From: Podarcis pityusensis
Lineage: Eukaryota
Length of the DNA stretch: 64,000 nucleotides
Reading direction: 5' to 3' (one strand)
Assembly: GCA_964106645.2 (NCBI GenBank)
Contig: OZ067045.1
The notes under the pieces were generated by a model. That model did not search any database. It was given only the letters and a program-made list of their open reading frames with translations, and was not told the DNA's origin. How positions within the stretch are numbered: the first letter of the stretch is position 1; each line of letters begins with the position of its first letter. Positions 41,681 to 47,077 of this stretch are shown in pieces. The translations under genes were made by a program, and so were the position numbers.

Positions 41681-41728
41681 TTCATCAAAGTATTTGTATA
41701 CTCCTTTCTCACAAAACATCAGTGCAGT

Positions 41729-42163
41729 TGTAGTGGTTCTAGGGGTTGCTCGTGCGTAAGCCGGTGCAAACACCTGGCTGGGTTGCCTGAGTGAACCTTT
41801 CCTGTCCGGACAGCCACTCACCCGTGGTTGTCTCAGTCGCTGGCAGAATCCGTCAGTGGGCGTTTCTTAAACTTCTTCCAGCAAAGAAGTTCTTTGACGC
41901 CTAGTCTCCTCCTACTCTCTCTGCGCGAAAGCCTTCTGCGCAAGGAGGGCGTAGGCAGCGGAGGACCTCTACTCTCCCCGCTAGTCCCCGGCAAGGAGTC
42001 ATGGGACCGCCTCGCTGCTTCCCCCATCTGCCCCCCTTCTCCACTGGTGCTACGCTGATTCTCTTCCCCAGAAGATGGGCTGCCTCTCCCAATCCCGGGA
42101 CGCTCTCTGGAATACCTCTGGATTTTGCTCTCTCCCTCCGGCACTGATGGCAGTTCCCTGACA
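41729..42163 (-). repeat. 3' LTR (435 bp) of the Gypsy element
   Basis: On the minus strand it starts TGTCAGGG immediately after the PPT and ends ...CCACTACA (TGT...ACA termini). Both ends match the two remnants of the 5' LTR. Confidence 0.93.
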
Positions 42164-42177
42164 TCCACCTCCTCCTC
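41833..42177 (-). CDS. Open reading frame across PPT and U3 of the 3' LTR (~114 codons); probable original C-terminus of Pol
   Basis: Part of ORF 41833..42291. It is +1 relative to the pol frame, and removing one G from the G6 run at 42182-42187 fuses it to pol (…RGGGGGPEEEVDVRE…). It ends in a Pro then Arg-rich block (PPLPTPSLRRRLSRRESRRR). Confidence 0.55.
   Translation of the reverse strand, partial: EEEVDVRELPSVPEGESKIQRYSRERPGIGRGSPSSGEENQRSTSGEGGQMGEAARRSHDSLPGTSGESRGPPLPTPSLRRRLSRRESRRRLGVKELLCWKKFKKRPLTDSASD
42164..42177 (-). promoter_or_regulatory. Polypurine tract GAGGAGGAGGTGGA
   Basis: 13/14 purines, immediately 5' of the TG that starts the 3' LTR. Confidence 0.85.
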
Positions 42178-45100
42178 AGGACCCCCCACCCCCACCCCTG
42201 GCACGATTTTCCGGTACAACCTCCTCTCTCTCCTCGGTCGACGATGCGGGGAATCCCCTGAAGGAACTGTCATCATCTTCTGAGGATTCAAAACCAGCCA
42301 CCCATCCGCTCAGATTTCTTCCCGCTGGTTGAACCTCCCAGTCTGATCCTTCTCCCTCGGACACCTCCCCTCCCTCCTCTTCGGAGGCAGGAAAACCCAC
42401 AAAGTCCCCTTCGTCATCTGTGGGTCCAAATTCTTCCTCCCAGAATCTAGCTAATGGTTTGGGCTTATCCGGGAACAAACCGTGGAATTCTTCCACCAGA
42501 TACCCGTCAGTGATTGATTCAGCAGGGACCCAAGTGTTTTCAGACCTAGGTTCCCCCTCCCAGGCTACCAAGTACTCTACCTGGCGACCTCGCCACCTTG
42601 AATCGAGTATTTCCGTGGCTTTGTTACAGTGTTCCCTCTCCTCTACCTGTGGGTGGGTGGTAACCCCTCCCTCCCGTCCCGGGAATTCCCGCCCCTCCCT
42701 GTAAGGTGAAAGTAGGGACCTATGGAACACCGGATGTATCTTCATGCTGTCAGGCAACTTGAGTTTAAATGCCACGGGGTTAACCTGCTGTATTACCTCA
42801 AAAGGCCCCAGCCGCCTAGGCTGCAACTTCTTGCACCCTCACTTTAGGGGCAACCCTTGGGATGACAACCACACCCGGTCTCCCACCCGTATGGCCTCCC
42901 CCTCCCGACGGTGCCTGTCCGCCTGCCTCTTGTAAACTTCCTTGGCCCGCTCCAAGTTCAGCCTGAGTTGCTGGTGTAAGGCCTCCATTTCTTCCACCAA
43001 TTGCTCAGCCGCAGGTACACTCCATCCTTCCTCCCCCCGCCCCGAGAAGGCCCTGGGGTGACACCCGTAATTGGCCATGAAAGGGCTCATTCCCGTGGAC
43101 ACGTGTTCTGCGTTATTGTACGCAAATTCAGCCAAAGCTAATTTCTCTACCCAATCGTTCTGTCTCTCGCTGACATAGCAGCGTAGGTACTGCTGGAGTA
43201 TACTGTTCGCTCTTTCGGCTTGTCTGTTGGTTTCTGGGTGCCTCGCCGTCGATAAGCTCACCTCGACCTGTAGCAAGCTCATGAGTCTCCGACAGAACCG
43301 GGAAGTAAATTGTTTCCCACGATCCGAGATTACCCTCAATGGAGCCCCATGCAGTCTAAAAATGTGATCCACAAACAGCCTGGCTGTCTCCTCTGCCGTT
43401 GCTGCATGTGAGCAAGCTACAAAATGGCACATTTTAGTCAGTAGATCGACCACTACCATGACCGCTGTCTTTCCCCTTGACTTGGGCAGATCTGTCATAA
43501 AATCAATGGACACCACCTCCCAGGGCCTTTCTGGTGTAGGTAAGGGTTCCAGTAGCCCCGCGGGGGCAGCCCTTTCCCCCTTTGCCCTCTGGCATCGGTC
43601 GCACCCTCGTACATATTCTCGTACGTCTTCCCTCACCTTTGGCCACCAGAACTGCCTGGTGACAAGTAGCAAGGTCTTGTGCTGTCCAAAGTGACCAGCT
43701 GTTGGGTTGTCATGGAGTTGTCTAAGTACCTTCCCCCTCAAAGTCTCCCCTGGTACATACAGCGCCCCCTTATAGTACAGTAGCCCTTCCTTTTCCTCAA
43801 ACCCTCCATTGACTTCCTTTCTATCCCTGAGTTCCCTGATTTTTGTCTGAGCAAACTCATTGTCTCTGGTGAGCCCTGCCAGTTCTCATTTCCCAACCAA
43901 CGCTCCCACACACACACACCAGTCCTCGGGGAACACGTGCCTGGTCTATGGTGGCCCCTCTCCTTCCATGTACTCCGGTTTCTGGGAGAGAGCATATGCC
44001 CTTACATTTTCCTCTCCCGGCACGTAACGGATCTCAAAGAAAAACTTGGCGAACTCCTGGGACCATCTGATCTGTCTCTGGTTGAGCACTCGCGCGGTCC
44101 GCCAGTATTCCAAGTTCTTGTGGTCAGTTTGGACCTGGATCTTGTGCCGCGCCCCTATTAATAGATGTCTCCATTGCCGAAATGCTGCATAGATCGCAAG
44201 CAGTTCTCGGTCATACACCGTGTAGTTTTGCTCCGACTTGCTCAGCTTCCTAGAGAAAAAGGCACACGGCCTCCAGTTCTGCTTGGCACCGGGCTGCAAA
44301 AGGACCGCTCCAATCGCGCGGTCGGACGCGTCCGTCTCCAGTCTCATGGGTTTCTCCGGATCCATGTGCAGGAGCTGCTCTTCCGAGGCGAACGCCTTCT
44401 TCAGTTTTTCAAAGGATTGCTGCGCATCCTCTGTCCACACTAACTTCTTTTTGCTACTAGGACAATCCGTTATGGGCGCTGTCAAGTGAGTGAAGTTCTT
44501 TATGGACTTCCTGTAGAAGTTGCTGAAGCCTAGGAACCTCTGCACATCCTTTCTGTTTTTGGGGGCTTTCCATTCCAGCACTGCCTTCACTTTGCCCAGG
44601 TCCATGGCTAGTCCTTTGTCTGACAACCTGTACCCCAGGAACTCGACCTCCCTGGCGTGGAATTGGCATTTTTCCAGCTTGACCCACAACTGATGATTCT
44701 TCAATCTCTGTAGCACCTCCCTGACGTCTCTGACGTGTTGCTTTTCATTGTCCAAATAGATTAAGACGTCATCCAAAAAGGCTACGCAATTCTTGTACAG
44801 CAGGGGCCCCAACACATGGTGCATGAAGGCTTGAAAGCAGGCGGACCCCCGATTGTAATCCAAATGGCATGACTAAGTACTCAAAAGCCCCCAGGGGGGT
44901 GAACATGGTCATTTTCCATTCGTCCCCCTTCCTTATCCTAATCAGATTGTATGCTCCCCTGAGGTCCAGCTTGGTAAAAACCTTCCCCTGCCTCACACGT
45001 GTCAAAATATCGTCAATCCTGGGCATTGGGAAAGTCACGGGTTCTGACACCAGGTTTAGGGCCCGGTAATCCACGACTAATCTGGGCTGATTTGTCTCTT

Positions 45101-45715
45101 TTTTGTCCACAAAGAACACTGGACTGCCTCCCTCTCGCTGAAGACCTCCTTCAAATCAGCATATTGTGTTGGCACCTCCCTTTTTTGCTCCAGGGCCACC
45201 CCAGCCACCCTGGCCACAGTCCTTCTTGGTTCCTTCCCTCCCAGACAGTGTTCTAAGCAGTAAGCTGACCCAAAGGTGACCGACCCCTGATGCCATGACA
45301 CCACTGGGTCATGTATTGCCAGCCAGCTCATTCCCAGTATTATCGGGGGTCCTGCCAGCGTGGCCACGTGAAAGGCAATGGTTTCCGTGTGCCTGGAGAC
45401 ACTCATTCGCATTGGCGGTGTCTGGTGTGTCACTTCCCCTCCCAGGAGTTCCCTGCCATCGATGGTGGTCACCTGCAAGGGAAAATCTCGTGGCAACAGG
45501 TGGAGCTAGTGCTCCAGAGCGAAGTCTCTGCTGAAGAAATTACACGAGCTGCCAGAATCTAGCAGCCCCTCCACTTTGACAGGGTGCCCATTTGGGAGTT
45601 CTAGCACCACCTCTATGGCTATAGCTGCCTTGGGAGGGTCAGGCTGGGGCACTTCTATTGGTTGCTGGCCTGGCTGCTGCCCCTGCTGGTTGGCAGCCAG
45701 GCGTTGTCGTTTCCC
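42176..45715 (-). pseudogene. pol: Pol polyprotein (protease, RT, RNase H, integrase, GPY/F, chromodomain, acidic tail), inactivated
   Basis: PR LLDSG (DSG 45551-45559). [30 protein letters not shown]. RNase H TDAS/DRELLAI/TDHKNL. IN HHCC (LHDNPTAGH...CDRC) and D,D,E (SIDF, SDRG, AERAN). GPF module and chromodomain at about 42470-42625. Lesions: stops at 45506-45508, 43946-43948, 43886-43888 and 42839-42841, a deletion with frameshift near 45125, and a frameshift near 44855. Confidence 0.95.
45646..45715 (-). other. Programmed -1 ribosomal frameshift signal (G GGA AAC + H-type pseudoknot)
   Basis: Heptamer GGGAAAC at 45715-45709 in the correct gag phase, then a 6-nt spacer. Stem 1 is a perfect 10 bp (45702-45693 with 45677-45668). 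Loop GGGGCA (45683-45678) can pair with downstream UGCCCC (45651-45646). The -1 frame is open into the protease. Confidence 0.9.
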
Positions 45716-46671
45716 TGCACCGGCTCTTCCTCCCCCTTATCGTCGTGGCCTGCAGCCTCCATCATGCCTTGCCAGGCTTTTCGTTGAGGGCAGACCTTTG
45801 CAAAATGTCCCGGTCGCTGACAGAGGAAACACTTCTTGGTAGTTTTCCACTCCTTTTTCCGACCTTCACCAGCGTTTGAAACTTCGCACACACACGCTCC
45901 ATCAATTTCCATCGGCTCCGCCGCCTGGGAAGGCTCCCTCGGCATCTCCGGAATGTGGTTGTCATGGAAACGTTCCGCCCTTATCTCCCGCTTCTCCTGA
46001 GCCCACACTTCCTGGCGTACACCGATCGCAAGCACAGTCTTTGTGAGTTCATCCATCGACCGCGGGCGGGGCGCTCGGGACAACTCGTCTTTCACTTCGG
46101 GGGCCAAACCCGCTTCAAACAACATTTGTACTGGTTCAGAGTCCAGATCCCACCCGAGCTTGTGGACTAACATCACAAAACACGACCAGTAGTTTCTGAC
46201 GGACAGGCTCCCCTGCTTGCACCCCATCAGCTCCCTCCGTGTCACGCTTTGCTCAATCTCGCTGGAGAACATCGCGTCCATTCCCTGGTAGAATTTCTTA
46301 AGATCTTTCAAAGCGTCATTCCCCGTTGCCATCAAGGGCCTGATCCATTCGCGCGCCCCATCCTGCAGATGTCCAACAATGTAAGCCACCCTCTCCCCGT
46401 CATCAGCAAAGTCATTTTTCTGCAATTCCAAAGCGTACTGAATTTCCGTTCGGAAGGCATTGTAGTCTTGGGGCTCTCCACCAAACTTGTGTACCAGCCC
46501 CGGGACCTTCCTCCCTATCGGGGTGGCTCTGACCTGTGCATCCTGAGCCCGTCTCTCCTCCATCCGCGCAGACAGGGTAGCGACATGCGCCTCCAGGTCT
46601 CGGTTCCTCTCGACCAGACCTCGCACCATGGCTTCTTGCTCTGTCTCTCCGACCGGCCCTGTTTGGCTCAT
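45655..46671 (-). CDS. gag: Gag of the Gypsy element (338 aa, uninterrupted)
   Basis: ATG start. N-terminal coiled-coil-like segment, Sushi/PEG10-type capsid motifs (KFGGEPQDYNAF...VAYIVGHLQDGAREW, KQGSLSVRNYW) and CCHC zinc knuckle CFLCQRPGHFAKVC. Confidence 0.95.
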   Translation of the reverse strand: MSQTGPVGETEQEAMVRGLVERNRDLEAHVATLSARMEERRAQDAQVRATPIGRKVPGLVHKFGGEPQDYNAFRTEIQYALELQKNDFADDGERVAYIVGHLQDGAREWIRPLMATGNDALKDLKKFYQGMDAMFSSEIEQSVTRRELMGCKQGSLSVRNYWSCFVMLVHKLGWDLDSEPVQMLFEAGLAPEVKDELSRAPRPRSMDELTKTVLAIGVRQEVWAQEKREIRAERFHDNHIPEMPREPSQAAEPMEIDGACVCEVSNAGEGRKKEWKTTKKCFLCQRPGHFAKVCPQRKAWQGMMEAAGHDDKGEEEPVQGNDNAWLPTSRGSSQASNQ

Positions 46672-46711
46672 CGTGCTGCCTCTCCGGTGCTGCGCACAAG
46701 CAACGTCAGGG

Positions 46712-46722
46712 ACTGACGGATT
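46712..46722 (-). promoter_or_regulatory. Self-priming primer binding site (AATCCGTCAGT)
   Basis: Starts 2 nt after the LTR end, lacks the TGG of tRNA PBSs, and is exactly complementary to 11 nt inside the LTR (ACTGACGGATT, 41857-41847). Confidence 0.85.
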
Positions 46723-46724
46723 GC

Positions 46725-47077
46725 TGTAGTGGTTCTATGGGTTGCTCGTGCGTAAGCCGGTGCAAACACCTGGCTGGGTTTCTTTTTCTTTTTTCCATGT
46801 GCTTGTTAGGCAAAGACTAAATCTCTTTTTTTAAAAAATAATATTTATTACTTTCCAACAAAATAAACATACATAGAAAAAGAAAATAAACAATACAATA
46901 CAAAAACAATACCTAACACTAAACTAACAAAAACAATTTAAACTAAGAAAACAAAACAAAAACGATTTAAACTAAGAAAACAAAACAGAAACAATTTAAA
47001 ACACATCAGATAAATTCAATCTTTCATTCACTTATTTCCATGACCTCCTCACACCTCCCTTTTTGTATTCCCTGACA
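46725..47077 (-). repeat. Disrupted 5' LTR: only the first ~10 bp (47068-47077) and last 56 bp (46725-46780) remain
   Basis: Direct comparison with the 3' LTR; the interior is replaced by unrelated AT-rich sequence. Confidence 0.9.
46781..47067 (-). mobile_element. LINE (probably L1-clade) 3'-UTR fragment plus ~40 nt of extra sequence replacing the interior of the 5' LTR
   Basis: The minus strand is T-rich, with AATAAA followed by an A-tract (~46824-46849), then a short unique stretch and a second A-rich tract next to the LTR remnant. Composition resembles the L1 3' UTR at 40575-40790. Confidence 0.6.

Follow-up and report, generated by a model that had tools for sequence, protein, structure and literature searches.

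The window analyzed here, i.e., a stretch of 64,000 nucleotides from the lizard Podarcis pityusensis (contig OZ067045.1 of assembly GCA_964106645.2), carries a Ty3/Gypsy chromovirus on its minus strand at 41729-46780. We describe the C-terminal end of its integrase, where an acidic tail with two similar short units follows the chromodomain and resembles the ligands of the host chromatin factor LEDGF/p75. Pfam matches along 42176-46671 occur in the order gag, reverse transcriptase, RNase H and integrase with a C-terminal chromodomain, which defines the element as a chromovirus (Table 1). The protease piece expected for a chromovirus gave no Pfam match along 42176-46671. Minus-strand translation of 42176-42826 yields an open reading frame (ORF) of 216 residues that contains the SH3 domain, the chromodomain and the acidic tail.

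About 95 residues follow the chromodomain, of which 27% are aspartate or glutamate, 16% glycine and 11% serine. A preliminary description, made from the DNA letters alone, had assigned the element to a lizard chromovirus and had read in its pol frame, after the chromodomain, two units of the form W-x3-F, acidic linker and F-x-G-F-P-A-S. Both statements were confirmed, the first by the best matches, which are gypsy-type integrase and chromodomain proteins of Podarcis muralis, and the second by translation at the coordinates given in Table 1. At position -2 before F-x-G-F, unit 1 has a glycine and unit 2 a serine. CK2-type S/T-x-x-D/E sites can be read in the linker of unit 2 and after its F-x-G-F. 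Within F-x-G-F-P-A-S, six codons specify the same residue in both units, and each of them has a different third base in the two units; this suggests that the units arose by an old duplication and were maintained as protein sequence.

Table 1. Features of the chromovirus in the Podarcis pityusensis window (positions count from the first letter of the window).
Feature	Position	Strand	Basis and remarks
Gag (capsid and CCHC zinc knuckle)	45655-46671	-	Pfam PF03732, PF19259, PF00098
Reverse transcriptase, C-terminal part, and RNase H	43946-44863	-	Pfam PF00078, PF17917, PF17919; ORF list
Integrase, zinc-binding domain and catalytic core	42839-43741	-	Pfam PF17921, PF00665
Integrase C-terminal SH3 domain (Tf2-1 type)	42698-42823	-	Pfam PF24626, E 4e-15; residues 2-43 of the 216-residue ORF
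Chromodomain, degenerate aromatic cage	42482-42613	-	Pfam PF00385, E 2e-10; residues 72-115 of the 216-residue ORF
Tail unit 1: W-x3-F, 8-residue acidic linker, FVGF (42403-42392), P-A-S, acidic run	42362-42448	-	Translation
Tail unit 2: W-x3-F, 9-residue Ser/Asp/Glu linker, FRGF (42262-42251), P-A-S-S, acidic run	42218-42310	-	Translation
Polypurine tract, adjoining the 3' long terminal repeat (LTR) on its upstream side	42164-42177	-	Sequence; contig and read similarity of other copies ends at 42163
3' LTR, TGT...ACA ends	41729-42163	-	Word depth; contig loose ends at 42163 and 41729
5' LTR remnant, last 56 nt only	46725-46780	-	Sole flanking direct repeat, 98% identical to 41729-41784

We searched 1.84 billion representative proteins with HMMER, using the 216-residue ORF as query. 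Thousands of chromovirus proteins matched, and in only a handful did the similarity reach into the tail. These comprise the window's own family (P0001, P0002, P0066, P0153, P0154), a second lineage (P0003), a third lineage (P0005, P0151, P0152 and the fragment P0006) and, in addition, P0007. P0001 comes from a Logan run contig and P0003 from an ENA metagenome contig, and the other relatives with a determined source are Podarcis muralis entries. Two more searches of the same protein collection added only P0153, P0154 and P0155. A profile of the aligned tails run against the large protein collection found nothing, as low-complexity words swamped the candidates. At the nucleotide level, runs from at least nine differently labelled organisms contain about half of the words of the stretch, and the family is therefore widespread among the close relatives of the source species. 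One organism provided RNA reads over the SH3 domain, chromodomain and tail (42272-42760). They were thin, nearly all of one orientation and mostly less than 95% alike, a weak sign compatible with sense transcription of related copies. We also noted that P0026 (XP_077774286.1, Podarcis muralis), modeled as a vomeronasal type-2 receptor, is a chimera that starts with the integrase and SH3 domain of this family.

A tree was built on the SH3 domain and chromodomain alone, i.e., with the tail excluded. All eight tail-bearing sequences formed one group with 100/100 support, set off by a long stem and with large internal distances. The window's clade nests among vertebrate chromovirus sequences in this tree.

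Relatives also show how far the tail extends. With window positions 41700-43000, we compared contigs of three organisms as well as RNA reads of a fourth. Below about 42180, word depth was approximately 8-110 times that of the internal region, and many contigs lost similarity at 42163 and at 41729, from where they ran into heterogeneous sequence. We therefore placed the 3' LTR between these two points. The stop at 42176-42178, with which the span given in the preliminary description ends, is not the natural end of pol, since P0001, P0153 and P0003 are open across the matching point. Of these, P0001 and P0003 extend as far as a conserved basic C-terminus; the ORF of P0153 is shorter. The window carries the same continuation, down to a stop at 41833-41835, in a frame other than that of the F-x-G-F units; a break in its pol frame lies close to the purine-rich stretch at about 42179-42200, and the continuous P0001 ORF aligns with window positions 41836-42183. 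In intact relatives, the pol ORF crosses the polypurine tract and then about 330 nt of the 3' LTR. As pol runs on in this way, we conclude that the natural tail has about 210 residues, the last part of which is encoded by the LTR. The F-x-G-F units sit in the internal, non-LTR part.

The polypurine tract and the adjoining bases of the LTR exactly encode the peptide E-E-[V/I]-D-V (42150-42180, minus strand), which is conserved in all lineages. This conservation may be due to a constraint on the DNA (plus-strand priming, LTR end) rather than to protein function. Within the LTR, the segment 41832-41919 stands out by a summed word depth in three organisms of about 100 times that of internal pol and several-fold above the rest of the LTR. 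The excess may stem from a far more abundant element that has this segment too, or from very numerous solo LTR fragments.

An acidic tail of low complexity could resemble a known motif by chance and have no specific function. We shuffled the tail's own residues in 200,000 trials and counted the motif [EDST]-x-F-x-G-F. A single motif occurred in 2.7% of the shuffles, and as many sequences were read, some chance matches are to be expected. Two or more motifs, however, occurred in only 0.026%. Codon-position tests provided a second measure and were done pairwise, with the window set against L001, the Logan contig (ERR14657319) that bears P0001, and against the more distant L002 (ERZ27260045), which bears P0003. 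We used raw codon-position counts and the identity at four-fold sites; NG86 silent rates were above 0.75 and inflated by two-fold codons. Window and L001 share 70% nucleotide identity and have an identity of 0.43 at four-fold sites, i.e., silent sites are near saturation. In the tail, this pair differs at 15, 16 and 46 sites at codon positions 1, 2 and 3, respectively (pN 0.15). The SH3 domain and chromodomain gave 18, 25 and 58 differences and hence the same signature. Compared with L002, the tail has drifted overall (28, 29 and 36 differences at codon positions 1, 2 and 3); despite this drift, the Trp, the helix Phe and the F-x-G-F of unit 2 were kept.

We aligned ten units from four lineages. 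Invariant columns were limited to the Phe of the W-x3-F segment (referred to here as the helix Phe) and to both Phe and the Gly of F-x-G-F. The distance between helix Phe and F-x-G-F was always 8 or 9 residues. Because the units had been selected by F-x-[GE]-F, the invariance of F-x-G-F is partly built in, whereas that of the upstream Phe and of the spacing is not. All ten linkers, 8-9 residues long, are rich in D, E, S and T. At position -2, the eight units that do not belong to the window have E or S in seven cases and T in one (P0003); overall, S or E thus occurs in eight of ten units, and G solely in unit 1 of the window. Chance likeness is therefore strongly disfavored, and we consider it extremely improbable, given motif residues that are invariant across four lineages with near-saturated silent sites and a third-position excess like that of folded domains. 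Judged from these sequence comparisons, we regard the motif as genuine; it is old within its clade, and purifying selection has maintained it.

Motifs of this form are known as ligands of the integrase-binding domain (IBD) of LEDGF/p75 and of other TFIIS N-terminal domains (TNDs), and are termed IBD-binding motifs (IBMs) or TND-interacting motifs (TIMs). The published TIM consists of an obligate short helix anchored by Phe, Val, Leu or Ile, a linker, and F-x-G-F, where the linker is acidic, 8-16 residues long, rich in Gly, Ser and Thr, and phosphorylated by CK2 (PMC9987994). According to this review, every known partner of LEDGF or HRP2 has an F-x-G-F and depends on it, and several partners, e.g., JPO2 and IWS1, bear two or three motifs in series (PMC9987994). 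For HRP2 and DPF3a, the consensus is S/E-x-F-x-G-F within a 20-residue binding peptide, Phe-to-Ala exchange abolishes binding, and phosphorylation increases it (PMC7337902). In the fly, JIL-1 docks on the LEDGF-type domain of JASPer via D-F-x-G-F-D-E (PMC6877644).

The tail units agree with this description at the sequence level: they have the F-x-G-F core, S or E at position -2 in eight of ten units, an acidic linker of 8-9 residues with CK2-type sites, acidic residues after the core, and a context predicted to be disordered. Three further points of the preliminary description were upheld. Its likeness to the IBM or TIM stands when F-x-G-F, position -2, linker length and linker chemistry are held against the published definition (PMC9987994, PMC7337902). 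The expectation that F-x-G-F is conserved in relatives while the linker drifts is matched by an invariant F-x-G-F and helix Phe and a drifting linker. Finally, the preliminary description knew of no account of the motif in a vertebrate Ty3/Gypsy integrase, and our literature searches on retrotransposons or chromoviruses with TND, F-x-G-F or LEDGF found no prior description.

Disorder was assessed with an AlphaFold2 model of P0001 residues 153-400, computed with a 60-sequence alignment. SH3 domain and chromodomain were modeled with a predicted local distance difference test score (pLDDT) above 90, and the tail with a pLDDT of about 50. Within the tail, a single short helix formed, exactly on the W-x3-F segment of unit 1. 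The model bears on the idea that the tail is an intramolecular regulator, i.e., that it folds back on basic integrase surfaces or on the cage-less chromodomain and gates activity. The strongly negative charge of the tail, its position beside basic integrase surfaces and the basic, LTR-encoded C-terminus that follows would suit such a role. However, neither F-x-G-F docked confidently on SH3 domain or chromodomain at the low pLDDT of the tail, and invariant F, G and F at fixed spacing exceed what charge alone requires. We hence regard intramolecular gating as improbable.

The residue after F-x-G-F permits another explanation. Aromatic-Pro junctions are classic retropepsin sites, and F-x-G-F-Pro might thus be cut by the aspartic protease of the element, by which tail pieces would be trimmed off the integrase. 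Proline indeed follows F-x-G-F in both window units, in P0001 and in P0007. It is, however, replaced by S, V or T in unit 1 of P0153, in P0152, in P0003 and in P0002, and cleavage leaves unexplained why F-x-G-F and an upstream Phe are invariant at fixed spacing; we therefore give this explanation little credence, less than intramolecular gating. Readings as a clathrin-adaptor motif or as nucleoporin FG repeats were discarded, since neither residue order nor acidic context fits.

Changes in the chromodomain accompany the tail. Aligned to Drosophila HP1 (1kna), the chromodomain of the window keeps only the central Trp of the aromatic cage and has N and E at the other two positions, so that the canonical three-residue cage for methyl-lysine reading is absent. 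This loss bears on how the domain works and not on the membership of the element among the chromoviruses. Throughout the tail-bearing clade, the first cage aromatic is replaced by H or N and the third by E or T, and in the sub-lineage of P0151, P0152 and P0006 the central Trp is lost as well. Sister sequences have an aromatic residue at cage positions 1 and 2 in 52 of 52 cases and at position 3 in 51 of 52.

We also surveyed the tails of those 79 sister proteins in which the chromodomain is followed by 30 residues or more. Clearly basic tails were found in 49, an AT-hook-like GRP motif in 31, and an acidic tail in four; the acidic F-x-G-F unit was present in none of the 79. On one and the same branch, the cage and the basic tail were lost and the F-x-G-F tail was gained. 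As a separate observation, many cage-bearing vertebrate chromoviruses (e.g., P0023, P0032, P0039, P0051, P0081) have in common a basic tail that contains the AT-hook-like motif R-G-R-P and terminates in a conserved S-P-E-Y/F. Such a tail may aid targeting by DNA binding, a role of which we know no discussion.

Other retroelements carry their targeting modules at the C-terminal end of integrase, the position that the tail occupies here. We propose, at even odds in our estimate, that the integrases of one lizard chromovirus clade have in this tail an intrinsically disordered, functional extension with two tandem IBM- or TIM-like motifs. That these units tether the integrase to a host factor through a TND-type domain is, from sequence, a possibility we weigh as evenly balanced. 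In such a mechanism, the helix Phe of each unit would enter the first hydrophobic pocket of the IBD, a TFIIS-N-terminal-type domain, and F-x-G-F would fill the second. The candidate partners would be LEDGF/p75 (PSIP1) and HRP2 (HDGFL2), readers of H3K36me2/3. The acidic linker, probably phosphorylated by CK2, would lie on the basic patch between both pockets, two units would add avidity, and the integration complex would be tethered to transcribed chromatin, in line with the tethering to Pol II elongation chromatin that the preliminary description had suggested. The F-x-G-F tail would replace the usual targeting of chromoviruses, since the clade has lost both the methyl-lysine cage and the basic, often AT-hook-like tail. 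The sequence data show the motif, its conservation and purifying selection, its restriction to one clade and the loss of the cage, and they predict disorder with one helix; partner, phosphoregulation and any effect on integration sites are inferred. More tentatively, and with somewhat less than even confidence, we suggest that the clade swapped its ancestral targeting kit for tandem, phospho-regulated IBM mimics that dock integrase on LEDGF or HRP2, and that it would be the first retrotransposon known in the TND-TIM elongation network.

Several points weigh against this proposal. The AlphaFold2 model of P0001 formed no helix on unit 2, and a profile of the ten units searched against the PDB did not retrieve a known IBM peptide at E-values up to 10. 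As the tail was gained on the branch on which the cage was lost, both changes count as one event and not as independent replication. In P0154, a copy of the window's family, the Gly of F-x-G-F is replaced in unit 1, and this loss as well as the missing S or E at position -2 in unit 1 of the window are probably due to decay. Targeting of gene bodies is costly for a retrotransposon. Moreover, the motif has few residues, and motifs of the acidic-aromatic kind can also be used by other partners.

The last point leads to the principal alternative, namely a conserved short linear motif for a different partner, e.g., a histone, the nuclear import machinery or pore, a chaperone or another chromatin factor, with an IBM likeness that is convergent in form only. 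Selection and invariance show function but not the partner, the PDB profile search picked up no IBM peptides, and the P-A-S after F-x-G-F, conserved in the window's family, lies outside the IBM definition. On the other hand, the invariant positions are exactly those that define the IBM, with defined spacing and linker chemistry, and a Gly fixed between two Phe would be unexpected for generic acidic-aromatic histone-binding stretches. We consider a different partner rather unlikely, although more probable than any of the other alternatives discussed above.

The only match in the PDB profile search was a Numb peptide from a complex with 14-3-3 (5yqg_E, E 0.24), which shares S-F-R-G-F-P-A with the units. 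It was taken as a chance match and rejected because the basic residue three to four positions before the phospho-Ser is absent and acidic residues stand upstream instead. A phmmer search of the tail against PDB sequences returned only an antibody (E 0.77) and was not useful.

The window copy itself is a dead insertion: its coding sequence is interrupted by an in-frame stop and by frame breaks, and its 5' LTR is truncated. The stop at 42839-42841 lies between the integrase core and the SH3 domain, and the frame of the core is that of the ORF with SH3 domain, chromodomain and tail. Nearly all contigs of other copies have a different letter at position 42841, which indicates that the stop is private to this copy. 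Reverse transcriptase and the pieces upstream of it are spread over several frames. As only a direct repeat of 56 nt flanks the element, a full 5' LTR is lacking. Directly downstream of the LTR remnant and ahead of gag, we found a short perfect hairpin (46690-46724). The truncated 5' end borders on an AT-rich stretch (46860-47010) in which a unit of approximately 40 nt is repeated in tandem; this stretch may mark the event that removed the remainder of the LTR.

With canonical chromoviruses such as those of the Tf1/sushi group and MAGGY, the element shares the gene order, the SH3 domain of Tf2-1 type and a chromodomain at the integrase C-terminus. Unlike these, its clade has lost two to three of the three cage aromatics, carries an acidic F-x-G-F tail in place of a basic one, and extends its pol ORF into the 3' LTR. 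The host IBMs of KMT2A, JPO2/CDCA7L, POGZ, IWS1, MED1, ASK and DPF3a, and of fly JIL-1, have in common with the tail units an acidic linker rich in Ser and Thr, and S/E-x-F-x-G-F. An acidic stretch after F-x-G-F, a disordered context (predicted for the tail), CK2-type sites and, often, serial motifs are further common traits. The hydrophobic anchor of the host helix has a counterpart in the helix Phe of the units, for which a helix was predicted in unit 1 only. The linker of the element, with 8-9 residues, is at the short end of the host range. The Trp four residues before the helix Phe (eight of ten units) and, in the window's family, the P-A-S after F-x-G-F lie outside the published motif. 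Host IBMs sit in host transcription factors, whereas the candidate IBM described here sits in a retrotransposon integrase.

Among host IBM proteins, POGZ is likewise derived from a transposon, carries an IBM and binds the IBD of LEDGF and HRP2 (PMC9987994, PMC7337902). It is, however, a host gene that arose from a DNA transposon (pogo transposase) and not a mobile retroelement, and no homology between POGZ and the element tail was detected.

Where retroviruses and retrotransposons insert is explained by the tethering of their integrases to chromatin proteins; how costly these elements are to the host and how they can serve as vectors follows from this. The C-terminal tail of murine leukemia virus (MLV) integrase binds the ET domain of BET proteins, and the targeting domain of Ty5 integrase binds Sir4 by a motif that is phosphoregulated. 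In these systems, as in the mode proposed for the element, target-site choice is governed by a short linear motif of a disordered integrase tail, through which a chromatin protein is recruited; motif chemistry, host domain and chromatin state differ, however. If the units of the lizard clade bind as proposed, they would make the chromovirus a mobile element that mimics a host short linear motif and a natural experiment in a target switch from heterochromatin-type to transcribed regions. They would also provide a compact, portable peptide tag for LEDGF or HRP2.

LEDGF/p75 is the classic tether of lentiviruses, and we know of no retrotransposon that uses it or the F-x-G-F ligand mode. Lentiviral integrase binds the IBD via the folded dimer interface of its catalytic core, not via a linear F-x-G-F motif. 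The element, unlike lentiviral integrase, would mimic the host ligands of the IBD. For both, the IBD would be the route to transcribed chromatin marked by H3K36me (PMC9987994), and, if the proposal is true, the chromovirus would reach the lentiviral integration cofactor by ligand mimicry.

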